Origin: Takakia lepidozioides
Taxonomy: Eukaryota; Plantae; Bryophyta
Assembly (NCBI GenBank): GCA_030704615.1
Contig: CM060733.1
Span: 57,722,001-57,786,000 of the forward strand
DNA length: 64,000 nt
Direction: 5' to 3'
A program made the translations under genes and the position numbers. Position 1 is the first letter of the stretch. Each line of letters starts with the position of its first letter. Shown here piece after piece: positions 6,291 through 34,600 of the stretch. The notes beneath the pieces are model-generated. The model ran no database searches. It was not told the DNA's origin and saw only the letters and a program-made list of their open reading frames with translations.

Positions 6291-8489
6291 CTTTAAGATC
6301 CTGCCTCTGCCGATGCGATAGCAGCATTGTACTCTAGAGACTCCGAACGGAGTCCTGTCAACACCACACTAACTACACACTCGGTAGATACAGGTGACAT
6401 CCACTAGACTCCCATCCGCCAGATTGTCCAGCAGACTCCCGTCCAGGAGACTGTCGCCCAGCAGACTCTCCTCAACCAGGGGACATAGACACCCATCCAG
6501 CAGACTGCTCCTGAGAATACGCCGGCCCACCAGACTGTGTTCCAGCAGACTCCCATGCAACGGACTACTGGCCAGCAGACTGTGGTCAGCCAGCGGACTC
6601 CCAGGCAGCAGACTCCCAATCTCATTTCCACCATGGGCCTCTTTGGAGTTTGGCGATCACCATTGCCGGCAATTGATCCAGAAGCTGTAGACCTCGGTGG
6701 CCATTTGTTCCCTTCCATTATTCTATGGATTTTAGTATTGGAGAAGCGAACCATGTTCTGGAAGGCGCACAGTCCGTTGCTCATGCAGCCACGAAAGTCC
6801 ATAATGTGCCGCCACTGCTTGTGCAGCTCATCCTCATGGATGACCCACGCCTTCAGGAGCTGAGACATATGCCCATAGCGCATCCAACCGTTGGGGTGCA
6901 GGGAAAGCACTTGTTTAGAATATCTGAAGAGTATTTTGATCGCATTGCAGCTTCCTTCCTTCAGCATCGATGGATTGATGCGGGTGAGAAGAGTGGTGTC
7001 GATGAGGCCTTGTAATGGTTTGCAGCGGTGATGGAGCGAGCAGTGTTCGACATTGTCTGGAACAAACCAGATGTCTTCAAAGTCCTCTGATGTGGTCCCC
7101 TTTTGAACACCGGCTGCCAGCAATTCGCCATCTTGATGGAGCATGCTTGGAACGTCAAATCAAAGATATTGGTCTCATTGGCAACCTCCTGGAAGGTAAT
7201 TTCCCGTTCTTTTTTTTCCGTTCTGAAGTCCATCGGGTTTTGGTTGGAGTTTGCTGTGAGGCTGACCTTTTGAAACCCACCTGTTTCAGGAATGTCCGAT
7301 GTGGACGGGCACGTGCAGTCCACTACAACAGATTGCGGCTTTTACGTCTCTGTGTTATGACTGCAAATGCAGTTATGGAAGCCATTTACGACTTCCTGAC
7401 TCTGAAGACGTAAAAGCCTAGTCAAATGTGACATGGCAGATATGACTCTCCAGGCTGGCTGTGACGTGGCACCTGAGCAGCTGTGGGGGTAGTCATACAC
7501 GCTGGCTTTTTAGAATGACTGAACGGACAGTGTAGTCCATGTCAACAGCTGTGCAAGAGTGGCACGTGCTTGATACAAGAAATGACACGTGGCAGAGTGT
7601 TCGCTCTCCATGACTGCAAACTATGACTACGGGCGTGCTAATCCGGTTGCAACATGTGGCACGTTGCAGTTTTTACACATGGTCCCTCAGCAGATTGACA
7701 TGTGTTTTTTTTGGGTGTATTGCTATTTTTTTACATATTTGTATTTTTGCCACGTGGTGTAGTACTATTGGAGAGTGAAAATATATGTAGTCATTATTAT
7801 GACTATGATAGCAGTCATGTACATGTCTATTACAACAATGAAATATAATATATAATACAAAGAGAACAAGGCAACAAGACATAACTGCAACAAGCTGAGC
7901 AAAACCAAGAGATTGTACACCATCTCTATTTACCAATCTATTTATCATTATCATTTTTGTCACGATCTAAAAATACATAAAATAGTCACATGTTCTCATG
8001 TGAATTATATTGTCTAACTATAACACTTTGAAAAGTGTTCACCCAGAATCTTCTAACTACTCATGTATTCCATCAATCTGCAACCTATCAAAAACTAAAG
8101 CTTGCATGGCTTTAAGAATTACTACAGCAAGGACATCTGTTTGTTTTCCAAGTTCTTGCATAAGATGCACCAACCAACATTGCATTGTGAGACACTCACT
8201 CACTATACTCCAAAGCGTCCAGGGAAGGTCACTGAGCAACCTGCCAAGGCGGAAATAATTAAGAGAATGATCTAATACCATATATGAAAAACCAATGCCA
8301 GTGTTGTTTATGGTAACTTCTATCCCATGGACTCGTATACAAACCAAAGCAAAAAGGTTGGTGTGTGTTGGCGAAGTCGTCAGATACTTCACAAAGAAAC
8401 ATGCACTAAAAATGAGAGCCAGGAGGATAGGAAGGTCACTCACGTGTATACAAAGACGTCTTGTCCATTGCCCAACACCCTGCGTCACC

Positions 8490-9710
8490 CACACTCTATC
8501 TCTACTCCTTCAGCTATCCATGCCTCTGCACAAATCAAGCATTCAACCTTGCCTTGCTGCTAGCAACTGACAATGACAACCTACATTTGTTCTAGGAAAC
8601 ACCCAACTCAGCGTAGCACACTAGTTCCTATGCTGAATTGCGTCTGCTACTCTCTGAAATGTAGCAGGCATTCACCTTTCTGCCCCGGTTGACACATCAG
8701 TGACTGGGCTCAGATAAGTATTCATTCCACAACTTCTCCTCATCTTTGTTACCTGTTTTTTGACACTTTCCTGTTGTCACATTGGCAGTATCATGTCAAA
8801 GTCACTCCAAACTAGATTCACTCAACCAGCTAACTTGCAGAATTGAACATGTAAATTTAGGGCCGATTCTGATAAAGAGGGAAAAACAGGGTGAAATGTG
8901 TTGAAGAAGATGCCTTCATTAGCAGTGCCTGATTTTATCACTTGTGCCGCTGCTGCCAGTTGACCATCTACCCATGCAGGTTTCTTGTAGCTATTGATCC
9001 ACAGGGAATCACAGGTAATCTTGTGCTTGAAATCTGGCCCTCTTGGATGAATCTGGACCCACACGAAATCCCTGCTCCTTCAGCTATCCATGCTTCTGCA
9101 CAAATCATGCATATATCCTCACCTTGCTGCTAGCAGCTGACAATGACAGCTTCGAATTGTCAAAGCAAACACTAGCAAGGAAAACAGGGTGAAATATGTT
9201 GAAGAAGGTACCTTCACCCCTTTCCCCATCATTTGATTTCAGGTGTCCAAAGCCCCATCTCGCACTCCTGCTCTGCACACCCTGCAAGCATCGCATTCCA
9301 CGACACCACATCTGGTTCAGCCATAGTGTTGAACACTCCCTTAGCATCCTCAATGCTCCCACATTTAGCATACATGGCCACCAGAGCAATGTTCAGGATG
9401 ACATCTGGTACAATTGCAGATTTGATGATGTCACCAGGGATCTCTTTGCCCTTTTCCAGGGCTGCCAGACGCATTGCAAACGCACACAAACGTTCTGTCG
9501 GCGGCCTTCACCCCTTCCCCCATCATTTGTTCAAAGGTTGGAGCCTCCATCCCGCACCCCAGCTATGCATACCCTGCAAGCATCGCACTCCACGACACCA
9601 CATCTCGTTCAGCCACAGTGTGGAACACTCCCTTGGCATCCTCGATGCACCCACATTTGGCATACATGTCCACCAGGGCAGGGGCAGTGTTCAGAAGGAC
9701 ATGTGGTAAT
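8490..9710 (-). pseudogene. PLS-class PPR gene fragments (leader modules plus L/S/P motifs) in CACTA-A
   Basis: [61 protein letters not shown], with frameshifts. Confidence 0.85.
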
Positions 9711-10021
9711 TTGACAGGCATTCACCTCCTGACTTGGCTGTTCCCAACCCATCCTGCCATTGGCAAGAGATTCCACAGAAACTGATAGTTGTCTATTTGA
9801 CTGTATAACTATGTATCTCTTGCTTTCTTACAGCTTGTACTGTGACACGCGTAATGCTCTTGCTGTGTTGAATCATTTCACGCCTTCAGGTTTCAAAACA
9901 AACATTACCGTCTTTCTTTATCAGACACGTGCACCAAGACAGAATCTCACCAAAAGACTGTTGGTGTTCAACAGTACCATACATGAAGATAACTAGCACC
10001 AAAAGGGCATATGAAGCTTAC

Positions 10022-10108
10022 ACTGCTCTCCACTGGTATTAACCTGCACCAGGACTTCAAATGGCTGTCTTCCAGTCCACCCACGGCCTGCTATAAATGG
10101 CTTGCAAC
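10022..10108 (-). pseudogene. Captured single exon of PLP homeostasis protein (PLPBP/PROSC/YggS)
   Basis: VASHL*QAVGG../GRQPFEVLVQVNTSGEQ matches the family motif V.VQVNTSGE. Flanked by ag| acceptor and |gtaagc donor. Confidence 0.75.
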
Positions 10109-11174
10109 CTACGCTGATTACCATGAAAATTTCAAAACTGGCTTTACCAACCTAATAATTCAAGCATAATCAGCATTCGAGCTAAGGAAGCTTTACAAGC
10201 ATTGTGTTGCGAGTAAAGCCTTGGCAATGTCACCAGGAAATCCCTGGCTGAATGGATGACACTGAAATAATGGAGCTTGAAATCCAGCCCTCTTGGAGGA
10301 ATCTAGGCCCACACTCTATCCCTGCTCCTTCAGCTATCTATGCCTCTGCACAAAATCATGCATACATCCTTGCCTTCCTGCTAGCAGCTGACAATGACAG
10401 CCTAGAATTGTTCCAGCAAACATCCCCAACCCTACTTATCAACGAGCAATGAGCTAACTTACAAAATTCAATATGCATCTCAGGGCCGAGTCTGATGAGA
10501 GGGCAAAATAGACTGAAATAGGTCGAAGAAGAAGGTGCCCTCACCACACTGTCCTTGACCTTGTGTCATGACCCATGGAGGATTTGACCGACAAAAGGAC
10601 CTCTTGTGTGCGATGCTTGTGTCTGTAGTCAGGGATTGGTCAGTGAGAACCTGCACCACGGTGCAGTTGAGCAGGCAGACATTGAAACACAGTCTGCTAA
10701 GACCAAGCTGACTCTCCCAAGAACCTTGTAAACATCAGGAAGAATATCAAATCATGGTACTAACAGGAGCCAACAGCCCACATTTGCAGGATGGACAAAC
10801 TTCTTCACATCGTACATTAAGAAAAAGCCACACCTTGCGATTGCGGTTGTCGCACCCTCGTGAAGGATCTTTAAAAAACTCATGCCAGCTCTGCTCCATG
10901 ATTCAAATTCAGGGCCGAGTCTGATGAGAGGGAAAAACAGACTGAAATAGGTCGAAGAAGAAGGTGCCCTCACCACATTGTCCTCGACCTTGTGTCATGA
11001 CCCATGGAGGATTTGACTGACCATGAACCCAAGAGGACCTCTTGTGTGTGCTGCTTGTGTCTGTAGTTAGGTAATGTCGGATTGGTCAGTGAAACCACCA
11101 CGGTGCAGCTGAGTGGGCAGAGATTGAAACACGGCCTGCTAAGATTAAGCTAACTCTCCCAAGAACCTTGTAAA

Positions 11175-11898
11175 TGTCGCGCACCTCACTTCGGTAAGCT
11201 CCCCTTCAAGTCATAGTTACTCGCTTTGATGCGCGCGCCTAACTCCCAACCTGGCCGCCGGGCCAACTCGGAGCTTCGGCTGCTCACCGGGACATAACGG
11301 TCCCCCTTTTCTCCCCCAACAGACCCTCCACCAATTTGGGCCTAGTGGAAATTCCCTTTGGTAGTTGGCAGTCCGGAATAGCTCCCCACTTCTTGGTCGC
11401 TTTCCGGCTCGCACGCTTACTCACTAGTTTTTGGTCACCAACGGGCTTGCCCCGTTCTCGGGGTTATTACTCCCTATATATACTTCTGTGACTGTCCGCG
11501 GGGGTTTCACAAACAACCATGCCATTTTATGGCGAACCACCACGAAGACCCTCGATTCCCGGTGATGAGTCGCGGTGAGTCTTGGCCCACCCACCACGGC
11601 CCCATTGGACCGTGGTGAGTCCCAAGACTCCCCACGACTCCCACCACAAGGTCTCCACCCCATGGTGAGTCCTATGCCACCCCCACTAAGTCCCACTAAG
11701 CTACCACCACCCCTTGTGGAGCCACCCCCACCGCAACCCAGTGTGCGGGTCCACCTAGTGAGCGCCTCCGCCTCCTTGAGTGCCTTGGGCATTGAAGGGT
11801 GCTTCAGCCCCCCCGTACCTATTGCTGCCACCGCCCCCACCACAAGGGCAGCCCCTCTGCGTCCCGACCCCGTGCCCTTAAGGCAAAGGGCCGCGACA
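11175..11898 (-). repeat. 3' LTR (TG...CA), with PPT-like GGTAGGGGTGTG adjacent at ~11899-11910
   Basis: About 97% identical to 25209-25935 (about 19 substitutions and 2 small indels by eye count). Confidence 0.95.
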
Positions 11899-12803
11899 CA
11901 CACCCCTACCAACAGGGAGTCGACGTCCTCATTGACTTGTGCATTTTGTAGAAACGAACATCCAAGTTGTGGCGTCCCACATCAAGGAGTTTGTTTCCGC
12001 ACCATGGCGTCCCATGGCAAAGAACCAAACCCCACACTTGACTCTACTCTCCACTAGCTAGTTCGGCCGACTTCTTCCAAGTCCCGGCCAAGGGTGGAGC
12101 CTCTCAAGCTCCACCCAGTGCACTCTTCTTGGCCTACTTCAAGGCCAAGGAACGATCCTCCCCGAGGATCGAATCGCCTTACTGCAACAACATTACTTGC
12201 GACTGCTCATGATGCCGCTTTTGGCATCACCTTGAGCAAGGGTTCACCTTGAACCCTTTTTGACTAGGAAGATAACCTTGAACCAACCGTGCGCCCCAAT
12301 CACTACAATTGGGTCCGCCTTGGAATGCTGGCTTGAGGTACGGGAATACGCCGAAGCCGCACTACGACTTCGTCCCGAGGCTACACGATTATTGTACGTG
12401 AATGGAAGCACGTAGCTTCCGCGTTAGCCCGCACTACAAGGCAACCCCCTCGGTAGCGCAGTTATAGTATGCGCACGCGCCAGATGCGCACTAGCACGTG
12501 AACTCCCAAAGAAGACACAAGTTTCTTTGCCCCTTGGATGGGAGTCACCCGATTTCGGCTCTGCGCAAACACACGATTAATCCAATTTACCTCTCCCACT
12601 TTTGTAAGCTAGCATGCATTCTACACACTAGCCAACCATACCATGCATCACCATTCCAAACAAAATAGGAGGCGCAACATTTGGAAACCATTTCATTTAT
12701 AACAAAATTTGTACAGCACAAGTTTTTGCAATCGGATTCTTGAGCTAGCTAAGCCGAGCTAAGCATGCATTTCCACCCCTACGATCCAAGGTCGATGTCC
12801 CCA

Positions 12804-12903
12804 TCAACGTTTCTTCCGCTTTTGAGGTCGCCCTTCGAAAGCTACAACCGCCACGGATGCGTTTCCCATTTCTGAGGCACGCACCCAAGATGCCTCCACA
12901 TGA
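12804..12903 (-). pseudogene. C-half of the Gypsy chromodomain, separated by CACTA-B
   Basis: Reads HVEASWVRASEMGNASVAVVAFEGRPQKRKKR*, the in-frame continuation of YLMKWKGYH at ~20690. Confidence 0.9.
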
Positions 12904-14104
12904 CACTATAATACAAACTAGGATTTTTTACTCTGTATTTGACTCATTTTTTAGTCATTTGCGATATTTTTACTCCCAGCCTCCATAGTCGAACATGCGT
13001 GACAAAGGTCAAGTCGTTTCAGTCAAGCAGTCGAATCCAGATGCCAGGTTCTGACAGTGAAATGTGACAGTAAAACCTAGGGGTGACGTGTAGGCAACAC
13101 AGTATGACGTGGATGGGACGTGGCTATGACGTGGCTATGACGTGTAGTAAAGTGGTTTAACTGAATTATAAGGTGGATGCATGACGTGCAGTAAAGTGGT
13201 TTAACTGAAGTGGAACATATTGACTATATTCCATGATGTTTAGTATACGATTTGACTGTAAATCAGTGATAGTGACTGTGAAGCAGTAAAAAATGACACA
13301 TTTTAGTAAATATGTTTCACTCTGAAGGTGTATATACATATATACATATAAATATAATATAATATATGAATTGGGAGGCTTTTTATTTAATATTTGGTTT
13401 TGTTTTGTTTATTACTGTTATTTGGTTTTTTTCATTTACTTTTAGTTTATATCTGTACGTATGTGAATTAGTGGATGTGAATTAGTGGATATTGTATTTA
13501 AATTGGTTTAACTGAATTATAAGGTGGATGCGTGACGTGTAGTGAGTGGCTTAAGGGCAGAGTGACGTGGATGCATGACGTGTAATAAAGTGGTTTAACT
13601 GAAGTGGGACATATTGACTATGTTCCATGATGTTTAGTATACGATTTGACTGTAAACCAGTGATAGTGACTGTGAAGCAGTAAAAAAGGACATGGAAGGC
13701 TTTTTATTTAATATTTGGTTTTTTTTGTTTATTACTGTTATTTCGTTTTTTCCATTTACTTTTAGTTTATATCTGTACGTATGTGAATTAGTGGATATTG
13801 TATTTAAATTTTTTAATTCGCTGCACTGCATTGAAAATATATTACAAATACAACAAAACATAGAATACAAATACAGGTCGGAACCAAAAACATTTGGATG
13901 GCCACATTCTACAAATGACCAACATGAGGGCCATGTTGCCATATCCATAGATCACTGCCCAACTGAAGTCATTGAGTAAGGATAATCTGCTGTGCAGCTA
14001 GGTCCAGCACTATCGTGGACATGTCAAGAGAACATTATAAATCATTTTGAGAATGAATTTAGGTAGTTCCAGAGAATGGTGGTGCCTACCTTGTCACCCA
14101 AACT

Positions 14105-15445
14105 GACATCCACTTCCAGGGCTGCCTTGAAATACATATCCACCAAGGCAGTGTTTAGAGTGACAACTCCAGCTTTGATGATGACATCATGGACCTTTGT
14201 GCCCTTTTGATGGCTGCCAGGCTCACATTTAACATAGATGTACACCAGGGGAATGTTCAGAATGACATCTGGTACAATTCCAGCTTGGATAATGTCACCA
14301 TAAACCTCTTTGCCCCTTCCCAGGGCTGCTAGGCTCGCATATGCATATTACAAAAACAAATGAACATGACGGCCTGGTTTGGCTTCATCCCTTCCCACAT
14401 CATTTGCTCTTATGTTTCCAAAGCCTTAATCCCATACCCATGCTGCACATACCTTGCAATCATGGCACTCCAAAATACCACAACTCGTTCAGCCATATTG
14501 TCAAACTCTCCCTTCACATCAGGCTTGCTGCACCCACATTTGGCATACATGTCCACCAAGGCAGAGTTCAGAATGACAATTTCCCCTTTAACGATCGGCA
14601 TAAGCAAGGGGAAGGAGACAGCAGAGCTGCTGCTCTCTCCCAGCGCCAAAAAAACCAAAAGAAAAAAAAATTGAGGGGCTGAGAGAGCCGCCATGGCTGT
14701 GAAGTACCAGTATGCTGCAACGTGATGTGGTTGGGCTTCACCCCTTCCCCCATCAATATTTGATCATGGGTCTCCAAAGCCTCCATACCATGTCCCTGCT
14801 GTGCATACCCTGCAAGCATCACCCATTCACAATCTCCAAAGCCTCCCTGCCAACCCAATATATAAACAGAGTACACATAAGTTCCTTGCTTTGCATCCTC
14901 AATGCACCCACATTGGGCATACATGTCCACCAGGGCAGAGTTCAGAATGACATCTGGTACAATTCATGCTTTGACAATGTCAACATAGACCTCTTTGACC
15001 TTTTCCAGGGCTGCCAGGCTTGCATAAGCATTGCAATCACACAAAAATGTGATGTGATTGGGGCTTCACCCCTTCCCCCATCATTTGATCATAGGTCTCC
15101 AAATCCACCATCCCACGCCCTGCTCTGCATACCCTGCGATGCTTGTGAGTGTGTACCTGCTTTCCAGCTTCCAAACCTTTTTGGCGTGAATCCACATCAT
15201 TTGTTGGCACTAGGAAAGGGTTGAGACTGAGCTGCTTAACTACTCCCTGGTCTTACATAGTGGGTTTACATAGTGTGCCAAGCACAACATCTGGAGCCAA
15301 AGCCTCCATCCAGTGCCCCTGCTGTGCATACCCTGCAAGCATCGAGTTCTACGACACCACATCAGCTCTGACAATGTTGCCATGGGCCTCTTTGCCCTTT
15401 TCCAGGGCTGCCAGGCTTGCACACGCACTGCAACCGCACACAAAC
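14105..15445 (-). pseudogene. Scrambled PLS-PPR motif fragments in CACTA-B
   Basis: Several partial L/S/P motifs ([31 protein letters not shown]) with frameshifts and filler. Confidence 0.85.
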
Positions 15446-18400
15446 CTGATCAGCCCAAAACCAATGGCCAGCCTCTCACTGTGGTGGCAAAGAGAAAATT
15501 CCTTTTCCTCCCCCACATCATGCAATACAAAGCGCGTATCAGACACATACCCCGCCTCCTTTCATCTGCCCAGACAATCTTCTCAGCTCAGCATGGATTT
15601 CCTTAATTGGGATGCAACTTGTCATCTACAGCAAGGTGTGCACCCTGTCGCCAACCCCAATGCAGCAGCGACCTGGCTGCTTTCTAAACCCCTCTGACCT
15701 TCATCATTCTTCTCACCTTTGCAGTATCATCCCACCTGCCAGCTGCAGCATACATGTTTGATACCAACACATAAGTCACGGCATCCTGTTCATCCCATTT
15801 GAGGATAGATGTTGCCGCACGTTCAGCCATCTCCACATTGCCATGGATTCTGCAGGCACCAAGCACGGCCTTCCACACCACAAGATCTGGATTGATTGGC
15901 ATCTTATTAATCAGATCCACTGCCTCATCCAGTTGTCCCGCACGTCCAAGAAGGTCCAACATACAGCCAAAGTGCTTTACTGTCGGAGTGACACCATGAT
16001 CTTGATTTCCTTCATTCAGTAGGCCAGTGTGGCTGCATGCAGAGAGAACACATATAAAGGTGAGACTGTCCGGCTTCAAGCCATTCTTTTGCATTTCCTT
16101 CAAATAGTTGCAGGACCTCCCTATGACCATGCTGGGCATATCCTGCGATCATCGCGTTCCATGACACCACATTTCGTTCAGCCATATTGTCGAACACTCC
16201 CTACGCATCCTCAATGCACCCACATTTGGCATACATGTCCACGAGGGTATTGTTCAGAATCACATCTGGTACAATTCTAGCTGTGGCGATGCAACCATGC
16301 ACCTCTTTGCCCTTTTCCAGGGCTGCCAGGCTTGCACACGCACTGCAAACGCACACAAACGCGATGTGGTTGCGCTTCACCCCTTCCACCATCATTTGCT
16401 CATAGGTCTCCAAGGCCTCCATCCCGCCCCCCTGTAGTGCATACCCTGCAAGCATGGCGTTCCATGACACCAAATCTCGTTCAGCCATATTGTTGAACAC
16501 TCCTTCCACGTCCTCAATGCCCACATTTGATATGTATGTCCCCGAGGGTGTTGTTCAGAATCACATCTGGTACAATTCCAGCTTTGACGATGCAACCATG
16601 GACCTCTTTGCCCTTTTCCAGGGCTGTCAGGCTTGCACAAGCATTGCAAACGCACACAAACGTGATGGAGTTGCGCTTCACCCCTTCCCCCATCATTTGC
16701 TCATAGGTCTCCAAGGCCTCCATCCCGTGCCCCGCTGTGCATATCCTGCAAGCATGTCGTTCCATGACACCAATTTCGTTCAGCCATATTGTTGAACACT
16801 CCCTCCACATTTGGCATACATGTCCACAAGTTATTGTTCAAAATCACATCTGGTACATTTTCAGCTGTGACGATGCGACCATGGACCTCTTTGCCCTTTT
16901 CCAGGGCTGCCAGGCTTGCACACGCACTGCAGACGCACAGAAACTTTATGTGGTTGGGCTTCACCCCTTCCTCCATCATTTGCTCGTAGGTCTCCACAGC
17001 CTCCATCCCGCGCCCCTGCTGTGCATATCCTGCAAGCATGGCGTTCCATGACACCATATCTTGTTCAGCCATATTGTTGAACACTCCCTCGGCATCCTCA
17101 ATGCTCCCACAATTGGCATACATGTCCACGAGGGTATTGTTCAGAATGACATCTGGTACAATTCCAGCTTTCGCGATGCAACCATGCACCTCTTTGCACA
17201 TGCATTGCAAATGCACACAAACGTGATGTGGTTGGGCTTCACCCCTTCCCACATCATTTGATCACAAGTCTCCAAAGCCACAATCCCCCCTTGCGTGCCA
17301 CGACACCACCATCTTGTTCAGCCATAGCGTTGAAAATGGCCTTCGCATCCTCTTTCCCCTTTTCCAGAGCTGCCAGGCTTGCACACGCATTGCAAACGCA
17401 CACAAACGTGATGTGGTCGGGCTTCACCCCTTACCCCATCATTTGATCATAGGTCTCCAAAGCCACCATCCCACGTCCCTGCTATGCATACCCTGCAAGC
17501 ATCGCGTGCCACGACACCACATCTCGTTCAGCCATAGTGTTGAAAACTGCCTTTGCATCCTTAATGCACTTACATTTGGCATACATGTCGACCAGGGCAG
17601 TGTTCAGAATGACATCTGGTACAATTCCAGCTTTCACGATGTCATCATGGACCTCTTTCCCCTTTTCCAGGGCTCCCAGGCTTGCACACGAATTGCAAAC
17701 ACAAACAAACGTGATGTGCAACATTTGCTCATAGGTCTCCAAAGCATTCCTACCACACCCATGCTTGGTAAATCCTGCCAACATTATATTCCACGTGATC
17801 AAAGATGGTCGAGGCATTCTGTGGAAAACCTGGTGAGCATCCATGATGCTCCCACACTTAACATACATGTTGACAAGGGTGTTGAGTAGAAAAACATTTG
17901 GCATTAATCACTTTGGATAATGTGAGTGTGCACCTGTTTCCAGCTTCCAGACCTTTCATCTTGATGCACTTAAGCAAGAGACAGAAGACGTATCTGAATC
18001 TGCTGAAATGCCTTGTTAGTTTAAAGTTGTAGAGCCTCTGTCAGTCTGCCTGCCTCACAAAGCATCTTCACATGCCCAGCATAAGAGGCATTGTGGACTC
18101 CCTCTCTTGATCCTCTTTCAGAAGCTGTGGTCATGGTTGAGGTGCTTGATTTTATCAACTGTGCCGCTGCAGCTGCTACCTTTACTTGACCATCTACCCA
18201 TGCAGGTTTCTTGTAGCTATTGATCCACATGGAATCATAGGTAATCTGGAGCTTGAAGTCCAGCCCTCTTGGATGAACCTGGACCCACACTCTATCCCTG
18301 CTCCTTCAGCTATCCATGCCTCTGCACAAATCATGCATACTGCATCCTTGCCTTGTTGCTAGCACCTGACAATGACAGCCTAGATTTGTTCTAGGAAACA

Positions 18401-18470
18401 CCTAACTCAACTTATCACACTAGTTCCTATGGTCAATTGCATCTGTTACTCTTTGTAATCCAACAAGCAT
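15445..18470 (-). pseudogene. PLS-PPR-E1/E2-DYW RNA-editing factor pseudogene (DYW truncated)
   Basis: Leader, then PLS triplets, then P2L2S2/E motifs ([55 protein letters not shown]). Then PG box KQPGRCCI and [27 protein letters not shown]. Multiple frameshifts. Confidence 0.9.
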
Positions 18471-19205
18471 TCACCTTTTTGCCTCGATTGTCCCGCCATT
18501 GCCTGGGGTCAGAAAAGTATCAGAATTCAACATGGAAATTTAGGGCCAATTCTGATAAGAGGGAAAAATAGGGGTGAAATTTGTTGAAGAAGGTACCTTC
18601 ATTAGCAGTGCCTGATTTTATCAATTGAGCCGCTGGTGCTGTGGCTTCCAGTTCACCATCTACCCATGCAGGCTTTGTAGCTATCCTTCCACATGGAATC
18701 ATAGGTAATCTGGAGCTTGAAATTCGGCCCTCTTGGATGAATCTGGACCCACACTCTATCCCTGCTCCTTCAGCTGTCCAGACCTCTGCACAAATCATGC
18801 ACACATCCTTGCCTTGCTGCAGCTAGTAGCTGAAGCAGCTGACACTGACGCCCTAACCCTACCTACAATAACATGTCAAAATCACTCCAAAACCACCATA
18901 GATCCACCAACGAGCTTCTCCTAATCTATGTTATCTGTTGTGCCGCTACTGCTGCGGCTTCCAGTTGACCATCTACCCATGCAGGTTTCTTGTACCTATC
19001 CTTCCACAGGGAATCATAGGTAATCTGCCGTCATATACCCATCACAGGTCCAATCCAAACAGCAGCCCTAACAGCCACTTTTGGCAAGACCAGACATTTC
19101 AAAGACTGCCCTACATAATAAGCTTACACATATACCACTTTTAGCAGCTCAATGAGAATCCTGTCAGCTTTGGAAGAACACAGAAGAAAAAGGAGTGAGA
19201 AGAAC

Positions 19206-19344
19206 CTCGGCAGGGGTCTGCTCAGCGCGAAGGCGTCTGCCATCGAAAAGGAAGGCGATCAACTGGCCGACGGTCGCAGTATGCATGCATCAGCTTTCGA
19301 AGTGTGGCTGTGGTCTTAATCCTGAAAAAAACCTCCCCGCCATC
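19206..19344 (-). pseudogene. SUMO: Captured SUMO exon
   Basis: [47 protein letters not shown] with one small frameshifting deletion. Bounded by ag| and |gt. Confidence 0.9.
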
Positions 19345-19529
19345 CTACACATTGCAGCATCTCCGGCCATCCGTTACTAGACCCATACAAATTCTCCTTC
19401 ACAACACCTTCTTCTCCAACCACCCGAAATTACCACAATTCTCGCAGCTTTCTTCACGAGGAGAATCTACTGAGAGTCCCTGACATTTGATATAACCAAA
19501 TATATTTGTGAACCACATAAGAGGTGTAC

Positions 19530-19637
19530 CTGCGGACCCAACCATTGTGGGGAAGTACGCAGCACATAACGATCCTGCTTGGGTTTCTTCAACGGGTCAG
19601 TCTCGTGCAATGCAGCAGCTGCCTTCATGTAAGAGCT
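19530..19637 (-). pseudogene. PAL: Captured phenylalanine ammonia-lyase exon fragment
   Basis: [36 protein letters not shown] followed by a |gtacac donor-like site. Confidence 0.9.
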
Positions 19638-20688: not shown

Positions 20689-23600
20689 TGATAGCCCTTC
20701 CATTTCATGAGATACTCCGTTTCTCGATTCTTGAACCTCCTCGACTTAAGCACTGTCTCCACCTCGTACTCAGGTTCATTTTCATGATCCAACAGCACAG
20801 GTGGTGGACGCAACACTTGATGTCGATTCGGACGCGCTTCATCTTTGAAGTAAGGCTTCAAAAGGGAGACGTGGAATACCGGATGCACTTTGCTGTTTGC
20901 CGGCAGCTCCAATTCATACACATCCTCATTCATAACCTTCTGGATGCGAAAGGGTCCCGCATACAGAGGTACGAACTTCGGGCTTACTTCCAGAGGTAGT
21001 CAGAAATTCTTGATGTTCAACCAGACCTCCGTGCCTGCCTCAAACTTAACTTCCCTCCGCTTCCGATTCGTCTGCTTTTCATACCGTTTCCTAGTTTTGG
21101 CAATATTGTACTTTGCGAACTTCAACAAACGCTCGCGTTATTCCAGCACCGCTGCTGTTGCTGGTTCCTCAACGTCTTGGGCGGCCCAACTTGTCGGCAC
21201 CAAAGGTGTTTTTCCATAGACCAATACGAAAGGGGAAACTCCCGTTGCGGAGTGTTTTGTGTTATTATAACAGAACTCTGCCGCATCCAAGTGCTCCACC
21301 CAGTCCGATTGGTCTGCCGACACGTAATTCCGCAGGATCTGCTTCACCACGGAATTCACCCTTTCTGTTTGGCCGTCCATCGTAGGTCGGAAGGCGGTGC
21401 TCATGTTGAGCCTTGTGCCCATTTTCTTCCAAAGTACCCTCCAAAATTTACTTGTAAACTTTGGATCGCGGTCCGAGATAATATCCTTCGAGAGTCCATG
21501 ATGCTTGAAGACGTGGGCAAAATAAAGTCGCACCGTCTCCTGCGCCGTTGCCGTCTCCTTGGTGGGGATGAAATGGCCCATTTTACTGAACCTATCCACC
21601 ACCACCATGATTGCATCGAATCATTTTGACAGCGGCATAGCAGTCATGAAATCCATCGAGACACTTTCCCAAGACCCCTCTGGAATCGGCAAGGGTTGTA
21701 ACAGTCCCGCCTGCTTTTTGTACTCGCTCCGGTTTTGTTGGCATGTGGTGCATGTCTTGACATACTCCTCGGCCTCCTCCCTCAGTTTAGGCCAGAAATA
21801 CTCTTTCTTCAAGAGTGCCGCGGTGCGCTTGGCTCCGCCATGGCCCGCAAGCGGGCCATCATGGCATTCTCTCAAGAGACTATCTCTGATCCCTCCCTTC
21901 GGCACGTACAGACACTTTTGCTTGTACCGGAGCAGTCCATTTTGCAAGTGGAACTGCGATTTAACCCCCATCCTCAAGTCCCGCATCACGGACTTCGTCA
22001 TCTCATCCTTCCGGTAAGCCTTCCGGATCTTCCTTTGGAGTGCCGTCTCACCCCTGTACACCAACATGAGCTGCTGCTTTCTACTTAAAGCATCGGCCAC
22101 CACATTGTCCCGTCCCGGTTTGTACTGGATATCCACGTCGAACCCCGCCAAAGTATCTTGCCACCTAAGTTGTTTTGGGGACAACTTAGGTTGCGTGGCA
22201 AAATACTTTACCGTGACATTGTCCGTGAATACCTTCACCGGGTTGGAACCAACATAGTGGCGCCAAAGCTCAAGGCAATGCACCACCGCCTTCATCTCTT
22301 TCTCGTGCGTCGGCCACCGTCGCTCCACTTCATTCAGTTTCTTACTTTCGTAAGCCATTGGACGTCCATCTTGCATAAGTACACCCCCAATCGCGAAGTC
22401 CGACGCATCTGTATGAATCTCAAACGGGCGGCCGAACTCCAAGATTTTCAAGACTGGAGCTTCCGCCATCCGCTGCTTCAACTCGGCAAAAGCTTGGCCA
22501 CAAAAGGTGTTCCATACCCATATCTTGGATTTACACAGAAGGTCTGATAGCGGCCCCGCGATCTTGGCGAAATTTCTCACATACTTTCGGTAATAGGAGG
22601 CGAGTCCTAGGAAGGATCGCACTCCCGGGACCGAAGTCGGAGGTTCCCAGTCCAAGATCGCCCTCACATTTTTGTCATCCATTTTGATCCCATCCTGTGT
22701 AATCACATGCCCTAGAAACTCCACTTTTGTGACCCGAATTCGCACTTTGAAGCTTTGGCATACAGCTTCCCTTCCCGCAATTTCTGGAACACCCTTTTGA
22801 GGTGCTCCAAGTGCTCTTCTTTTGTTTTCGAGTACACCCAGATGTCGTCGATGTACACGATCACAAAGTCATCCAGCCACTCCTGGAAAAGGCTGTTCAT
22901 TAGCGTGCTAAAGGTCGCGGGTGCGTTGGTGAGGCCAAAAGGCATCACCAAGAACTCATACGAACCATATCTTGTACTCTTGCACGCGGTTTTCTCCTCA
23001 TCTCCTTCCGCCCCGCGGATTTGATGGTAGCCGGAGCGCAAATCGATCCGGCTGAAATACTTTGCTCCTGCCAACTGATCGAAGAGGTCGTTGATTCTTG
23101 GCAAAGGGTACCAGTTCTTGATAGTCACCTTATTCAGAGCCTTGTAGTCGACACACATCCGCAACGTCCCATCATTCTTGTCTGCGAATAGCACCGGGGC
23201 TCCGTAAGGTGACTTACTCGGCCGAATGTACCCCTTTGACATTAGATCCTTGAGCTGGGTCTTCAGCTCGACCAACTCTCTGTGGCTCAACCGGTAGGGC
23301 ACCTTGGTAGGCGGCTCCGATCCTGGTATCACCTCAATCTTGTGGTCAACTCCCCTTCGCGGTGGCAAGCCACTTGGTAACTCCTCCGGCATCACATCCT
23401 GGTATTTCTTCAAGATCCCTTTGATCCAATCTGGGTTCGGCTCCCTATCGCCTTCTCCCTTCACTTGTCTTACGTAAAGCAAAAACCGGGGCTCGTATGA
23501 CTCCTCCACGGCCCACTCCCTTGCTGACAGAAGGTTTATTCGCCCTCCCACGGGGTTGGGCGTTTCCGACACTCATAAAACCTTGCCACCATTCCCACAC

Positions 23601-25153
23601 GGTAGCATGACTACTCTCTTGCGGCCATCTATGACCGGTCCGGATTTGCTCAAAAAGGTCATCCCCAAAATGAGATCCACTCCATCGATCTTGCAAATGG
23701 TGAAGTTCTCACGTCCCTCCCAACTCCCCAATTGAAGAGGAACATCGAACGCCAACCTCGTCGCCAATTGTGGTTCTCCTTTGGCAGAACGCACCTCAAT
23801 AGAGGCCCCCACATCACTTGTCGGGAGTCCCAGCTTCCGTGCTGTTGCTGGTGTCATGAAGGAGTGCGACGCTCCTGTGTCCACCAACAACGACACATTA
23901 GTTCCGGAGATTATCCCACTCACAAACATTAACTGATTCCCTTTACGCAAGGCGTCAGTTTCCTGATACAACTCACAAGAGTAGTTGCCTACCTTGCAAG
24001 TCTTGGCGACCACCGCCTCCACCAAGCGGCTGATGGAATCTTCGGACAACTCCGTGGTTGCCCGAGTCATGTTCAATTGTCGGGGTTTCGTGCATTTCTT
24101 GGCCATGTGCCCGGGCTCCCCACAATTGAAGCATACTCCATCGAAGGTCGCTTTTTGTCCGCCACAAGGCGTCGTACCTGATTTTCCTTTCGGAGCACCG
24201 GGTGTCGTCTTGGCGTGTAAAGGCCCTCCCTTTGATTTCCACGTGCCATTGTCGCCGCGTGGCCTATCCTACTTCTTTTCCGGTCGAAAGGAGTCACCCT
24301 CCCGCTGGGTCTTCTTGTGGTTGAGTTCCGTACGGCCTTGTCTTTCGCCCCTTGGGACATCCGAGAAACATTCAGCCCTCTCAATTGCCTCGTTCAAAGT
24401 CTTAGGTGGCTTCTCCTCCAACTTCCGCCTGGCCCATGGGGCCAGTCCCGCCACAAAGTTGAAGACCATTTCTGGTTCTGCCATGTCTGCGACTTCGAGC
24501 AACAACACATTGAAAGCCTGAACATATCCCCGAATGTAATCCGTTTGCTTCAAATTCCTCATCTTGTCCCGGGCGAGCCAGGACGCATTGAGGGGCACAA
24601 ACTGTCTCTTCATAAGTTCATTGAACCCACTCCAGTTCAAGGTTTCCGGGTTTGGATCTCGGTCGTGAAGGCGTTTCTGCCACCATTGTTGAGCATAGCC
24701 CCTCAAATAGGTGGGAGCCACTTCTACCCGATCCTCGTCACTCAACTTGGCCGCCCAGAAGTACTGCTCTAGCTCCAAGAGCCAGGTGTTGAGTGCCTTC
24801 CGATTTCGGACGCCCTCGAAGGTGTCGGGTTCCTTAGGCTTCACCTTAAACTTTGCCTTAGTGGAAGTGGCTTTAGCCGCCTTCAGCACGTCTTTCAACG
24901 TCCCACCAAACTGCGCCAACAACCCTTCCCAAAAGGCTGCTGGCATGGGAGACATCTGTTGGTCTGTCGGAGCTCTCAGGGATTCCTTGGGCTCCGACTC
25001 CTCAGATTCCTCCCGTTCTTAAGCGGCCTCATTTTCAAAAGCATGCATCGCTTCCTCAAATGGCCGCTTCGGTGACACGTCGCCCCCACCAGGCTCACCA
25101 GGATCATCATCTTTTGGGCCGTTCCGCTTTCGCTTTGGCTTGCCCGACCCCAT
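20689..25153 (-). pseudogene. Gypsy gag-pol (gag, CCHC knuckle, protease, RT, RNase H, integrase, N-half of chromodomain) with frameshifts and stops
   Basis: CFNCGEPGHMAKKC; LLVDTGASHSF; VYIDDI; TDASDFAIG; ECHD..GH..CTTCQ; SMDF/SDRD/GQTERVN; HPVFHVSLLKPY; YEVETVL..YLMKWKGYH. Confidence 0.93.
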
Positions 25154-25194
25154 GATGAGGCCGATCCCAAAGACGATCGCGTACTGAACTCTAA

Positions 25195-25206
25195 GCTCTG
25201 ATACCA
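25195..25206 (-). promoter_or_regulatory. Primer-binding site complementary to initiator tRNA-Met
   Basis: TGGTATCAGAGC on the minus strand, 2 nt inside the 5' LTR boundary. Confidence 0.9.
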
Positions 25207-25208
25207 AG

Positions 25209-25935
25209 TATCGCGCACCTCACTTTGCTAAGCTCCCCTTCAAGTCATAGTTACTCGCTTTGATGCGCGCGCCTAATTCCCAACCTGGCCGTCGGGCCAA
25301 CTCGGAGCTTCAGCTGCTCACCGGGACATAACGGTCCCCCTTTTCTCCCCCAACAGACCCTCCACCAATTTGGGCCTAGTGGAAATTCCCTTTGGTAGTT
25401 GGCAGTCCGGAATAGCTTCCCACTTCTTGGTCGTTTTCCGGCTCGCACGCTTACTCACTAGTTTTTGGTCACCAACGGGCTTGCACCGTTCTCGGGGTTA
25501 CTACTCCCTATATATACTTCTGTGACTGTCCGCGGGGGTTTCACAAACAACCATGCCATTTTATGGCGAACCACCACGAAGACCCTCGATTCCCGGTGAT
25601 GAGTCACGGTGAGTCTTGGCCCACCCACCACGGCCCCATTGGACCGTGGTGAGTCCCAAGACTCCCCCACGACTCCCACCACAAGGTGTCCGCCCCATGG
25701 TGAGTCCTATGCCACCCCCACTAAGTCCCACTAAGCTACCACCACCCCTTGTGGAGCCACCCCCACCGCAACCCGGTGTGCGGGGCTCCACCTAGTGAGC
25801 GCCTCCGCCTCCTTGAGTGCCTTGGGCACTGAAGGGTGCTTCAGCCCCCCCGTACCTATTGTTGCCACCGCCCCCACCACAGGGGCAGCCCCTCTGCGTC
25901 CCGACCCCCTGCCCTCAAGGCAAAGGGCCGCGACA
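25209..25935 (-). repeat. 5' LTR
   Basis: Direct repeat of 11175-11898. Its terminal TG is mutated to TA at 25209-25210. Confidence 0.95.
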
Positions 25936-27093
25936 GTAAACATCAGGAAGAATACCAAATCATGGTACTAACATGAGCCAACAACCCACATTTGCAGGAT
26001 GGACAAACTTCTTCACATCGTACATTAAGAAAAAGCCACATCTTGCGATTGCGGTTGTCCCACCATCCTGAAGAATCTTTAAGAAACTTAGCTCTGCTCC
26101 GTGTTGTAAAATCAGGGCCGAGCGGGTAGAGTTTGAAACACGGCTTGCTAAGATGATTCTGACTCTCCCAAGAATGGCGAGCTCCCAGCCGAAACCTCCT
26201 CGCACACATACCCTAGCGTTTCTAGAGTTGCTTGCTTGAGATGCAAAGGTTGCTCCAACTGCGGGCCTCCCATGCATGTTTGCCCTCCCTCCCGCTCGCT
26301 CGCTCTAAGTCCCAGCCCTCTCTCTCTCTCCCTCCCGCTTGCTCTAAGTCTGTTCACGCTACCGTGATGGGCTACTTTTTAAGTTTTTTAACCTTTTTGT
26401 AAACCCTAAAAGCCCCTTTTTGATTTTTTTTCTTTTCTTAAAGGAAACCACAGGCCCTTGAGGAGGGGGGGAAATTCACCCGCCTTCATTTATGGGCCAT
26501 AAGACCTACAGGACGATCAACGCCCAGACATACCGTCACGAACAATCCCACACACGGGATAAGGGCAGCGAGTTTGAACCCCAAACCACCAGGGCGACAC
26601 ACTGTGCACTTACTAGCCGATGTGTTTTTTTTTAAATCTTTTTGCACTTTGTTTTGTTTTGTTTTGTTTTTAATTCATTCTAGTGGTGAGAGTCTCCGTT
26701 TTTTCAAAATATAAATACTCAGATATTATATATATAACCAGAAAAGCATGTGTCGACACGTGCAGTCATGTAGTGATTCATCCATGTGATGATATGGCAG
26801 AATGCATTAGAGTGAGAGTCATGAAGTCATATGTCTGTCTAGCAATATGCACACGTCATTCCAGTTTAGCCATGACCGTGACTGGTAGTCATATCTGCCA
26901 TGCCAATATTCGTGGTCAAACGTGTTTGACCTGTGTTGCGCAGAGTCCGGAGCCATGCAGTCGCATATATGCCTTCCTCAGACCTGCATTATGACTTCAA
27001 AAGCATTTTACAACTGTAAATGGCATTTCTGCCACAAATCTGTCATGACTGCGCACCCATGGGAGTCATAAAAGCCGCAATCTGTTTGTAGTG

Positions 27094-30000: not shown

Positions 30001-30502
30001 GGCCGCGTTTTCCACGCCTCCACAAAATCCCGTTTCCTTTTCAAGGACATGTTGTTATGGTCATTCACAAGACGGAAAGCCTTTGCTGCCGCAGGGTGCA
30101 ACATTCCCGGAGCACTTTTGGCCATAATATCAACGAGTTGACCTCTACAGATACGAAGACAGGAAAAGACATGTGCCTCCAGGTATTTGTCATCACCCAC
30201 AATCCGAAGTATATATGTGAATTCTTGCTCCGCAGATGCCTTCATATCAGCTGACCCTCGTCGTACGGAAAGTCGTCCGGAGCCTGTATGCCTGTTGCAT
30301 TTCTGGAATCCTCATCATCGGCTGTACTGCCCAACATCAAGTTCTGTAATCCTCCATGAGTGGTTCCCAACGAGGTGCCACAAGCGCGCACGATGAGGCC
30401 ATCCTGCAGGTCAGGGTGAAGTAGCTTGAGAACTCGAACTTGATGCTTACATAAGTTTCCCTTCATTGCCCACGGGCACGTGTAACAAGCCCAGGATTGT
30501 AA
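27094..30502 (-). mobile_element. Degenerate MULE-like host element with SWIM zinc finger (continues into ~5040-7320)
   Basis: SWACYTCPWAMKGNLCKHQ (SWIM) at ~30440-30500. Shared CAGACT-rich microrepeats at 6390-6620, 27200-27600 and 28340-28580. A reading frame runs across the empty CACTA-A site (..RESKQ/TARARPHRTFLKQVGFKR). Confidence 0.6.
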
Positions 30503-33500
30503 CACTACAACAGATGAGCGTTTTTATGACTGCACATATGACTATTTTTTCAGTCTTATATGCGTTCATGACTACATCACTCTGTAGTGAAAAAAGCCAT
30601 GTCATAGCGACTAGTATTTAGGACTGCATTTTGCAAGTCATAGCCGTGACTGCGTGCGTGGCACCTGGAGTCATGCATAAGAGAGTGATGTAGTTACAAC
30701 TCTATGACTTACATACGACTAACTATATGACTACATTGTCTGATGAGCGTTGCCTACATGGAGAGGCTTTAGAGGAACACGTGCACCATTGCGCAAGCGA
30801 CACGTCACGACACCTGTTGCACTTCAGATGTGACATGTGGCACTTAGACATAATATATGACTAGCATATATGGCAGGGTTTATGCCACGTGTCATCAAGA
30901 ATGTCTCTGAAAATAATTTAATAGTTATATTTGTAATTTTAAATTCTTAAATTTATATTTTATTTTTGAAAACAGAGGATAGTAGCTTGGAAAATTTTAT
31001 TAAATGGTATTATTGTTTAATTTAATAATTTTATATAAAAATAAAAATAGATTAAATGATTTAAATTCTTCATTACATGGTGAAATTCTGATATAAAAAC
31101 AGAATGGACCCCTCTTACATACTAGCAACCACAAGAACATTCAAAATAGACAAGTACAGGGGAATACACGCCCTATAAATTATATTACAAAAATCCAAAT
31201 GAGACCAATGTCCCAATGGACACCTTAGAGGCCACAAGGTCCAAAAATCCATGCCTGAAAAGGTCCAGTAAGCAAAAAATAAGCAAGCCCACACATGGGC
31301 TGAATTGTTGTAATACTAGTTTGTTCTGGTGCTACTAGAATCAAGGACCCTGTTAACAGTGCAATACTTACGGCCGATTTGATAAGAGGGAAAAACAGGG
31401 TGAAATGTGTTGAAGAAGGTGCCTTGATTAACAGTGCCTGATTTGATCAATTGTGCCGCTGCTGCTGCGGCTTCCAGTTGACCATCTACCCATGCAGGTT
31501 TCTTGTACCTATCCTTCCACAGGGAATCATAGGTAATACGGAGCTTGAAATCCGGCCCTCTTGGATGAATCTGGACCCACACATCTATCCAGGCTCCTTC
31601 AGCTATCCATGCCCCTGCACAAATCATGCATACATCCTCGCCTTGCTGCTAGCAGCTGACAAATGACAGCCTAGAATTGCTTGAGCAAACATCCCAACCC
31701 TACTTATCACACTAGTTCCTATGCTGACTTGCGTCTGCTTCCAACAGGCATTCACCTTTTGCCTCGATTGTTCCACCATTGACTGAGGTCGGGAACGTAT
31801 TCATCCTAGAGCTTCTCCTCGAGTCTCTGTTATCTATTTTTCGATACTTTCCTGTCGACCACATAGGCAGTAACATGTCAAAATCACTCCAAAACTACCA
31901 TAGATCCACCAACGAGCTAACTTGCAGAATTCAACATTAAAATTTAAGGACGACTCTGATAGCAGGGGAAAACAAGGTGAAATATGTTGAAGAAGGTACC
32001 TTCATTAGCAGCACCTTGTTTTATGAATTGTGCTGCTACCGCTGCTGTTTCCAGTTGACCATCTACCCACTTGTAGCCGCTGTGAGCTATTGAAGAAGGT
32101 GCCCCCTTCCCCCATCATTTGATCATAGGTCTCCATACCATGTCCCTGCTCTGCATACCCTGCAAGCATCGCGTTCCATGACACCACATCTCGTTCAGCC
32201 ATAGTGTTGAAAACTCCCTTCGCATCCTTAATGCACCCACATTTCGCATACATGTCCACCAGGGCAGTGTTCAGAATGACATCTGCTACAATTCCAGCTT
32301 TGATGATGTCACCATGGATCTCTTTCCCCTTTTCTAGAGGTCCCAATCTTGCACACGCATTGCAAACACAAACAAACGTGATGTGGTTGGGCTTCACCCC
32401 TTCGCGCAACATTTGCTCATAGGTCTCCAAAGCATTCCTACCACACCCATGCTTGGTAAATCCTGCCAACATTATATTCCACGTGATCAAAGATCATTGA
32501 GACATTCTGTTGAAAACTTCGTGAGCATGCATGCATGATGCTCCTGCACTTAACATACATGTTTGCTCCTGCACCCACATTTTGCATACATGTCCACCAA
32601 GGGTATTGTTCAAAATGACATTTGGTACAATTCCAGCCCTGATGATGTCGCCATGGACCTCTTTGCAAGCCCTTTTCCAGAGCTGCCATGGCTGTGTTTA
32701 TAATGACATTTGGTACAATTCCAGCTTTGATGATGTCACCATTCACCTCTTTGCCCTTTTCCAGGGCTGCCAAGCCTCCATCCCGCGCCCCTGTTGTGCA
32801 TTCACTGTGAGCATCGCACTCCACGACACCACATTTCGTTCAGCCCTATTGTTGATCACTCCCTTTGCATCCTTGATGCTCCCACATTTGGCATACAAGT
32901 CCACCAGGGCAGTGTTCAGGATCACATCTGGTATGATTCCAGCTCTGACGATGTCGCCATGCACCTCTTTGCCCTTTTCCAGGGCTGCCAGGCTTGCACA
33001 CGCACTACAAACGCACACAAACGTGATGTGGTCGAGCTTCATCCCTTCGCACATCATTTGCTCATACGTCTCCAAAGCCTCCATCCCGTGCCCCTGCTGT
33101 GTATACCCTGCGAGCATCGCACTCCACGACACCACATTTCGTTCAGCCATATTGTTGAACACTCCCTTTGCATCCTCGATGCTCCCACATTTGGCATACA
33201 AGTCCACTAGGGCAGTGTTCAGGATCACATCTGGTATGATTCCAGCTCTGTCGATGTCACCATGCACCTCTTTGCCCTTTTCCAGGGCTGCCAGGCTTGC
33301 ACACGCACTGCAAACGCACACAAACGTGATGTGGTCGGGCTTCATCCCTTCACACATCATTTGCTCATACGTCTCCAAAGCCTCCATCCTGCGCCCCTGC
33401 TGTGTATACCCTGCGAGCATCTCACTCCACGACACCACATTTCGTTCAGCCATATTGTTGAACACTCCCTTTGCATCCTTGATGCTCCCACATTTGGCGT

Positions 33501-34600
33501 ACATGTCCACCATGGCAGTGTTCAAGATCACATCTGGTACGATTCTAGCTCTGACGATGTCACCATGCACCTCTTTGCCCTTTTCCAGGGCTGCCAAGCT
33601 TGCACACGCACTCCAAACGCACACAAACGTGATGTGGTCGGGCTTCACCCCTTCCCCCATCATTTGCTCATAGGTCTCCAAAGCATTCCTACCACATCCA
33701 TGCTTGGTAAATCCTCCCAACATTATATTCCACGTGATCAAAGATCATTGAGGCATTCTGTTGAACACTTGGTGAGCATCCATGATGCTCCCGCACTTAA
33801 CATACATGTTGACAAGGGTGTTGAGGAGAAAAACATTTGGCGTGAATCCACTTTGGATAATGTGAGTTTGCACCTGCTTTTCAGTTTTCAGGCCTTTCAC
33901 CTTGATGCACTTATGCAAGAGACAGACATACGTATCTGAATCTGCTAAAATGCCTCCTTGGTTTAAAGTCTGTAGACTCTAGAGCCTCTATCAGTCTGCC
34001 TGCCTCACAAAGCATCTTCACATGCCCATAAGTGCCAGAAGAGACATTGTGGACTCCCTCTCTTGATCCGCTTCCAGAAGCTGTGGTCACGGTTGAGGTG
34101 CCTGGTTTTATCAACTGTGCCGCTGCAGCTGCTGCCTTCAGTTGACCATCTACCCATGCAGGTTTCTTGTGGCTATTGATCCACAGGGAATCATAGGTAA
34201 TTTTGTGCTTGAAATCTGGCCCTCTTGGAAGAATCTGTACCCACTCTCTATCCCTGCTTCTTCAGCTATCCATGCGTCTGCACAAATCATGCATTCATCC
34301 TTGCCTTGCTGCTAGCAGCTGACAATAACAGCCTAGACACCCAACTCAGCTTATGACCCTAGTTCCTATGTTGAATTGCGTCGTTACTCTCTATAATCTA
34401 ACAGACATTCACCTTTTTGCCTCGATTGTCTCACCGTTAACTGGGGTCACAAAAGTATCCATTCCACAGCTTCTCCTCATCTCTGTTACATACTTTCCTG
34501 TTATCACATTGGCAGTATCATGTCAAACTCGCTGCAAACTAGATTCACTCAACCAGCTAACTTGCAGAATTCAACATGGAAATTTAGGGCCGATTCTGTG
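30503..34600. mobile_element. Pack-CACTA element C (left end only; right end not found)
   Basis: CACTACAACAGATGAGCG at 30503 truncates the SWIM ORF. A TGAC-rich subterminal region and AT-rich tract precede PPR cargo, as in elements A and B. Right boundary is approximate. Confidence 0.75.
32100..34408 (-). pseudogene. PLS-class PPR pseudogene with three near-identical 303-bp PLS triplets
   Basis: ORF 32743-33741 (332 aa) of L-S-P triplets. Upstream motifs carry an in-frame TGA (probable CGA>TGA). No E/DYW domain. Confidence 0.9.

Follow-up and report, generated by a model that had tools for sequence, protein, structure and literature searches.

In this work, we analyzed a window of 64,000 nucleotides (64 kb) from the genome of the bryophyte Takakia lepidozioides, in which three segments bearing CACTA-type transposon ends, here named elements A, B and C, carry sequences for pentatricopeptide repeat (PPR) proteins of the PLS class. 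We consider it probable that A, B and C are transduplicating (Pack-type), non-autonomous CACTA/EnSpm elements belonging to two families, and that they carry genomic copies of a gene type that joins PDF motifs, a PPR array, an E motif and a DYW deaminase domain (PDF-PPR-E-DYW). Element B transposed together with its PPR cargo into a Ty3/Gypsy retrotransposon lying within A, and the cargo of all three elements is pseudogenic.

Hornworts, some mosses, lycophytes and ferns have thousands of PLS-PPR editing factors, and retroposition is the current published explanation for their multiplication (PMC13386178). The window offers a clean case of another route, in which a cut-and-paste transposon moved a PPR-DYW copy with a predicted intron, genes of this type are also carried by a second family of transposons, and the PPR arrays were remodelled on the element.

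Insertion of element B with its PPR cargo

The termini of B are CACTATAATACA and CACTACAACACA, with a terminal inverted repeat (TIR) of 12 nt common to both ends. The element interrupts an open reading frame (ORF) of the Gypsy and is flanked by a perfect 3-bp target-site duplication (TSD), TGA/TGA. When B and one TGA were deleted in silico, the Gypsy integrase/chromodomain frame was restored ('...EYLMKWKGYHHVEASWVRASEMGNA' / '...RETEYLMKWKGYHHVEASWVRASEMGNA'). Further evidence came from public contigs placed on positions 12701-18700 of the window, whose sequencing runs are coded X1 (DNA), X5, X6 and X7: 32 contigs of X1 go from position 12903 straight into TGATAGCCCTTCCATTTCA, the sequence after 20688, so that the site is unoccupied in other copies of the Gypsy and TGA is the exact duplication. 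B thus transposed together with its PPR cargo, as the original prediction had proposed from the clean TSD.

Two further contigs bear on the mobility of this family. In one contig of X7 (record 25, 683 nt) the match to B begins exactly at 12904 and is preceded by 508 unrelated letters, and in one of X5 (record 9) the match to the left end of B breaks at 12902, two bases from the CACTA terminus. By their sequence, both contigs point to further B-family copies elsewhere, and they are too short to reveal PPR cargo. The left subterminal region of B (13127-13816) also contains internal tandem duplications with units of 161 nt and 105 nt (89-96% identical) and five copies of TGACGT.

The elements and the retrotransposon that separates A from B are the following.

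7321-27093, no strand assigned: element A, non-autonomous CACTA, with a TIR pair and AGTCAT clusters at both ends
11175-25935, minus strand: Ty3/Gypsy chromovirus within the A cargo; TSD GTAAA; long terminal repeats (LTRs) at 11175-11898 and 25209-25935
12904-20685, no strand assigned: element B, non-autonomous CACTA of 7,782 bp in the Gypsy chromodomain; TSD TGA at 12901-12903 and 20686-20688
30503-34598, no strand assigned: element C, one-ended CACTA fragment, with an A-related left TIR and AGTCAT cluster followed by cargo

The retrotransposon that received B has the features of a Ty3/Gypsy chromovirus, namely LTRs (97.1% identical to each other), the 5-bp duplication GTAAA and coding sequence for gag, protease, reverse transcriptase, RNase H and integrase with a chromodomain. 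The order of events is A, later the Gypsy into the cargo of A, and last B into the Gypsy; the insertion of B is younger than that of the Gypsy. This Gypsy family has another copy at 35812-38319 (89-92% identical), which is truncated at 35849.

The membership of the three segments in the CACTA superfamily is based on their ends. The word CACTAYAAYA opens all five element ends; its count in the window is five, where 0.65 would be expected, and 0 of 100 shuffles reach this count. CACTACAACAGAT occurs twice, against 0.09 expected. Within the terminal 400 bp, AGTCAT is present in 6-8 copies at the left end of A, the right end of A and the left end of C (background, 0.34 per 400 bp), and AGTCAA/TTGACT in 4-5 copies at each end of B (background, 0.2). 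Within the 64 kb, these clusters of subterminal motifs are confined to the five element ends. The segments therefore combine TIRs starting with 5'-CACTA, arrays of short subterminal repeats in both orientations and a 3-bp TSD, perfect in B and agreeing at two of three bases in A. Judged from these motifs, there are two CACTA families, one with AGTCAT repeats (A and the one-ended C) and one with AGTCAA repeats (B).

The TIR of A pairs 7321-7350 with 27063-27093 (30-31 nt, 90% identical over 31 nt, with one indel), its right end being placed at 27093, one base past the limit implied by the inverted-repeat arms, and a second inverted pair of 19 nt is found at 7429 and 26887. Only about 5.0 kb of A is its own sequence, the remainder of 7321-27093 being the nested Gypsy and B. 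The left end of C, at 30503, resembles the ends of A (CACTACAACAGAT..GCG.TTTTATGACT). No further AGTCAT cluster or matching end that could serve as the right end of C was found anywhere else in the window; its likeness to A and B ends at 34598, and 34599-35848 is unrelated sequence. A candidate right end, CACTACAATA at 35821, was rejected, as its flanks differ (TAA versus ACA), it has neither subterminal motif nor homology, and it adjoins the truncated Gypsy copy, from which it is 28 bp away. It is an orphan end with no partner, motif or duplication.

No Pfam transposase match was obtained with any ORF tested in the window, and the non-cargo sequence of each element segment amounts to about 0.6-1.2 kb, which leaves no room for a transposase. 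The interior is mostly derived from host genes (PPR, E, DYW and PDF sequences), the elements are non-autonomous, and B was mobilised with its cargo, all of which are features of Pack-TYPE elements. The original prediction of three CACTA elements with different TIRs and no recognisable transposase is therefore retained as regards the CACTA ends and the lack of a transposase match, but the elements fall into two families and C has a single end.

An ordinary cluster of local tandem PPR genes or pseudogenes, hit by unrelated transposable elements (TEs) and with CACTA ends nearby by coincidence, would account for the presence of three homologous PPR loci, all oriented alike, in a span of 27 kb, and the one-ended state of C and the imperfect duplication of A would agree with it. 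Nevertheless, this explanation is very unlikely: it is already contradicted for B, whose PPR sequence lies with it inside a Gypsy ORF, between perfect 3-bp duplications and with empty-site paralogs, and all five motif-bearing CACTA ends in the 64 kb are 0.75-1.2 kb from PDF-PPR sequence.

The gene type carried by A, B and C

PPR sequence was detected by tblastn only at 9241-9709 (A), 14123-17907 (B) and 32008-33978 (C), always on the minus strand, and every PPR stretch in the window is consequently inside A, inside B or behind the left end of C. The homology and common orientation of the three cargos, as well as this confinement, had been anticipated, and both held in the tblastn search. The arrays have a periodicity of 303 bp, corresponding to P-L-S triplets. 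The parts of the cargo are listed below.

8487-9160, minus strand: A cargo, PDF-motif units (repeat X), identified by shared repeats and by tblastn with the PDF motifs of protein P0121
9211-9709, minus strand: A cargo, PLS-PPR fragment of about 1.6 triplets, fused to PDF-unit sequence at 'MMGKG'/GTACCTTCTTCAA
10271-11174, minus strand: A cargo, more PDF-like units, X' and Y, split by the Gypsy insertion; Y resumes at 25936-26174
14045-15450, minus strand: B cargo, extra degenerate PPR fragments, with a GT-AG joint skipping 14528-14707 in RNA-like runs only
15352-15561, minus strand: B cargo, open piece with the N-terminal part of the DYW deaminase; Pfam match at about 15427-15552
15687-18100, minus strand: B cargo, PPR N-terminus, PLS array and L2-S2-E1, with many stops and frameshifts
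18142-19931, minus strand: B cargo, PDF-motif units of the N-terminus, with X in three copies (18142-19069) and Y (19639-19931)
31355-32069, minus strand: C cargo, PDF-motif units downstream of a truncated PPR array
32008-33978, minus strand: C cargo, PPR N-terminus and PLS array, containing 303-bp triplet duplicates
34098-34598, minus strand: C cargo, PDF-motif unit in which a predicted GT-AG intron (34235-34412) splits the PDF motif; located upstream of the PPR array

The expectation that one element would include E and DYW parts was borne out by B. Its E motif, at about 15690-15842, matched Pfam E_motif with E = 2e-14 (residues 102-153 of the piece 15687-16148), and its DYW_deaminase match, with E = 2.3e-8, covers profile positions 1-43 of 93. 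The DYW domain is cut after HSE and then fused to a PPR L motif, so that the zinc-binding CxxCH and the C-terminus are missing, and E2 is also largely missing. No E or DYW sequence was found in the cargo of A or C.

Besides the PPR arrays, A, B and C have in common repeat X, which encodes '...PRGPDFKHKITYDSLWINS.KKPAWVDGQL'. A phmmer search with one reading frame of X matched 12 proteins, nine of which were scanned with Pfam; in three of these nine, an SSB domain is accompanied by C-terminal repeats of the matched motif. An SSB domain combined with a 'PDF motif' is the architecture described for OSB proteins (PMC6963530), and by this resemblance repeat X can be assigned to the OSB-type PDF motif. 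A third shared repeat, Y, also holds first halves of PDF motifs. The best match of X, protein P0121, is encoded at 455-4570 of a 4,755-nt contig of another species (L001) and consists of 1,371 aa with three N-terminal PDF motifs, a long PLS-PPR array and an E motif; its PDF motifs matched the A cargo at 9046-8954 (tblastn, E = 3e-11). Judged from this predicted protein, the fusion of PDF and PPR is a real gene architecture outside the Takakia genome. Our literature search found no paper on a fusion of the PDF motif with PPR.

Since P0121 has the same order, the arrangement X-X-X-PPR-E-DYW in B mirrors a single natural gene type and was not pieced together from two genes. The sequence features taken together thus assign the cargo of A, B and C to one host gene family with OSB-type PDF motifs, a PLS-PPR array, E and DYW. 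The window copies resemble P0121 in having OSB-type PDF units ahead of a PLS-PPR-E body, and differ from it in being broken and in lying between transposon ends. The cargo had originally been described as PPR sequence; PPR is indeed present, but the cargo is not made of PPR pieces alone and represents a single intron-containing gene type. The contig of P0121 and a second contig with PDF matches (L002) were set aside, as both belong to other species and neither resembles the window at the nucleotide level. A protein database search with a 333-aa PPR piece of C returned nothing above 54% identity (Diphasiastrum, Sphagnum and Ginkgo), in a database without the proteins of this genome, and a metagenome scan for a 29-nt invariant word of the cargo gave no match.

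The PDF motif is interrupted in the elements: between its halves, '..WWDNRGKK' and 'ILPRGPDFKHK..', lie about 178 nt that start with AAG|GTGAATG and end with ..CAG|, with GT and AG sites conserved in three copies. Removal of this spacer gives an in-frame spacing exactly as in P0121, and the spacer is therefore a predicted intron retained in the cargo. Because this predicted intron is kept, and because the unit has TIRs and a 3-bp duplication, the cargo was probably copied as DNA and not by retroposition.

In the published model, scattered PPR duplicates stem from retroposition and have LTR elements in their vicinity (PMC13386178), and a Gypsy element is adjacent here, which would suit PPR copies that are retrogenes merely located near TEs. 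That reading is hardly credible for the window, as a predicted intron is kept in each PDF unit, the mobile unit is bounded by CACTA TIRs and a 3-bp duplication with no poly(A), and the Gypsy is the target of an insertion and not a carrier.

Abundance, transcription and remodelling of the cargo

Cargo-like sequence is highly repeated in the genome. On the 6 kb covered by the contig placement, 82,400 contig pieces of X1 were found at at least 90% identity, and the summed word depth of X1 over the cargo is about 100 times that over the terminal region of B, a ratio that is not a copy number. As regards expression, labelling X6 and X7 as 'RNA' is a guess, and the read data are short contigs, none of which spans an element. 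This label is supported by three observations. First, cargo depth is strong in both runs, whereas the very abundant Gypsy flank is not covered at all in X6 and barely covered in X7. In addition, contigs nearly identical to B occur in both runs between 13900 and 15256 (0-2 mismatches over 120-230 nt). Finally, X6 and X7 alone contain a minus-strand joint that leaves out 14528-14707, with GT..AG borders, and that is absent from the DNA runs. On these guessed-RNA runs, B-like cargo gives rise to sense transcripts that are spliced. The 180 nt skipped by the joint are a T-rich non-PPR insertion in a degenerate PPR unit of the B tail.

All three cargos are pseudogenes, with stops and frameshifts throughout. 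The longest open piece (333 aa, 32746-33744, in the C array) has no start, E or DYW. As for the hallmarks of an editing factor, there is no intact ORF with an HxE...CxxCH centre, and a P-L-S array with E1 and a partial DYW is present in B only. Contigs of the RNA-like runs leave B at 15687 to continue into KKEPG... (E2) and at 15446 into TPPGTPIRII (DYW), parts that B lacks; intact relatives exist at nucleotide identities of at least 90%.

The history of the arrays is partly readable in the copies. In a tree of PLS units, the middle triplets cluster by element, with support of 97/95 for B and 99/97 for C, and two C triplets differ at 12 of 303 positions; the arrays thus grew by tandem duplication of triplets on the elements. 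A joint 14747>17718 in the DNA runs indicates copies with shorter arrays. Furthermore, A and C have apparently the same junction from PPR to PDF (MMG.G followed by G(T/C)ACCTTCTTCAA), from which it follows that cargo already rearranged was probably propagated within the A/C family.

Substitutions among the copies are nearly even across codon positions. The ratio of nonsynonymous to synonymous substitution rates (dN/dS) for the collinear first triplet of B versus C is 0.27, which suggests that part of the B-C divergence took place under selection; the tests as a whole were mixed (0.27-0.8) and, being confounded by repeats that align out of register, were used as a hint only. Such a signal could come from separate captures from working paralogues or from a spell of function on the element.

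In the mechanism that we propose, a transposase supplied in trans would bind the CACTA ends and subterminal repeats, move the whole unit and produce 3-bp duplications; the movement itself is seen in B, which entered the Gypsy already inserted in A. The cargo would then decay and be remodelled on the element, as displayed by the tandem duplication of PLS triplets within each element, by deletions and microhomology joins that fuse PPR to PDF or DYW pieces, and by the truncation of the DYW deaminase. In this way, the elements would spread PPR-DYW sequence through the genome at the DNA level.

Several points weigh against this account. First, the window contains no autonomous partner and is the only region examined for one. 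The duplication flanking A is imperfect (GTC/GTT), and no recognisable ORF or other identifiable feature is interrupted at its insertion site. In addition, the ends of B share a TIR of 12 nt and no more, and C has no right end in the window. Besides, no single molecule extends across an element in the short-contig data, and the RNA label of X6 and X7 was guessed, though the splice joint supports it. Finally, the low dN/dS of the first triplet hints that a history of one capture followed by neutral decay is incomplete.

The original prediction had gone further, regarding the elements as a possible vehicle that copies and recombines editing factors. The movement of B with its cargo and the amplification and rearrangement of the arrays agree with it, but its functional part does not hold for the window, where the three cargos are pseudogenes. 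In its strong form, this proposal makes CACTA elements the main engine of the expansion of working PPR-DYW genes, with intact genes being copied and arrays recombining to new RNA specificities. In its favor are the near completeness of the cargo as a gene, introns included, its presence in two CACTA families, the changes in array length inside the elements, the dN/dS of 0.27 and the intact E2/DYW relatives in the RNA-like runs. We nonetheless regard it as unlikely, because no intact TE-borne copy was seen in the window, apparently the same dead PPR-to-PDF junction in A and C indicates that non-functional cargo was propagated, and substitutions fall nearly evenly over codon positions. It is tempting to speculate that the PDF-PPR-DYW family rose to thousands of copies mainly through CACTA transduplication, and not through retroposition, with working genes that originate on the elements and are dispersed by them, and with new arrays for RNA recognition arising through duplication and recombination of triplets within the elements, but we would give this extension a rather low probability.

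Relation to known systems and neighbouring features

Transposons with TIRs that transduplicate pieces of host genes include the Pack-MULEs of rice and CACTA elements of the Tgm-Express type in soybean; the captured pieces are often transcribed and mostly non-functional, and the Pack-MULEs belong to another superfamily, with 9-bp duplications. In those systems the captured genes are heterogeneous, unlike the single expanded organellar RNA-editing family found here. The retroposition model of PPR expansion is reportedly also found in O'Toole et al. 2008.

Of the known systems, the ones most similar to our elements are the Pack-CACTAs described in Arabidopsis thaliana and rice (Catoni et al. 2019, PMC6379663; Pack-TYPE survey PMC8903248). 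Like them, A, B and C are non-autonomous, with CACTA ends, 3-bp duplications, no transposase, an interior derived from host genes and cargo rearranged between copies. In contrast to the short fragments of several genes reported there, what is carried here is an almost complete gene, intron included, from a single family; furthermore, two CACTA families carry the same gene type and the host is a bryophyte. Neither PMC6379663 nor PMC8903248 mentions PPR cargo, mosses or bryophytes, and our literature search found no description of CACTA elements with PPR cargo, in line with the initial impression that such elements had not been described before.

Retroposition has been proposed for the PPR expansions in hornworts, Takakia and lycophytes (PMC13386178). 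The phenomenon is the same, dispersed PLS-PPR duplicates in early land plants rich in PPR genes, whereas the copies described here move as DNA, with the predicted intron kept, TIR ends and a 3-bp duplication. If a genome-wide census were to confirm the association of PPR sequences with CACTA elements, some of the PPR genes counted in published reports would in fact be transposon cargo, and transposon biology would offer a way to test how new editing specificities originate.

The window also contains tandem repeats at 2720-3939, in arrays with a 120-bp period (79-96% identical), and at 39883-41580, in an array where about seven units repeat every 245 bp or so (66-100% identical). Successive ORFs on the plus strand at 41646-46729 have weak Pfam matches to endonuclease/exonuclease/phosphatase, chromodomain, PCIF1 WW domain and RNase H, and by these matches look like a non-LTR retrotransposon with extra domains.

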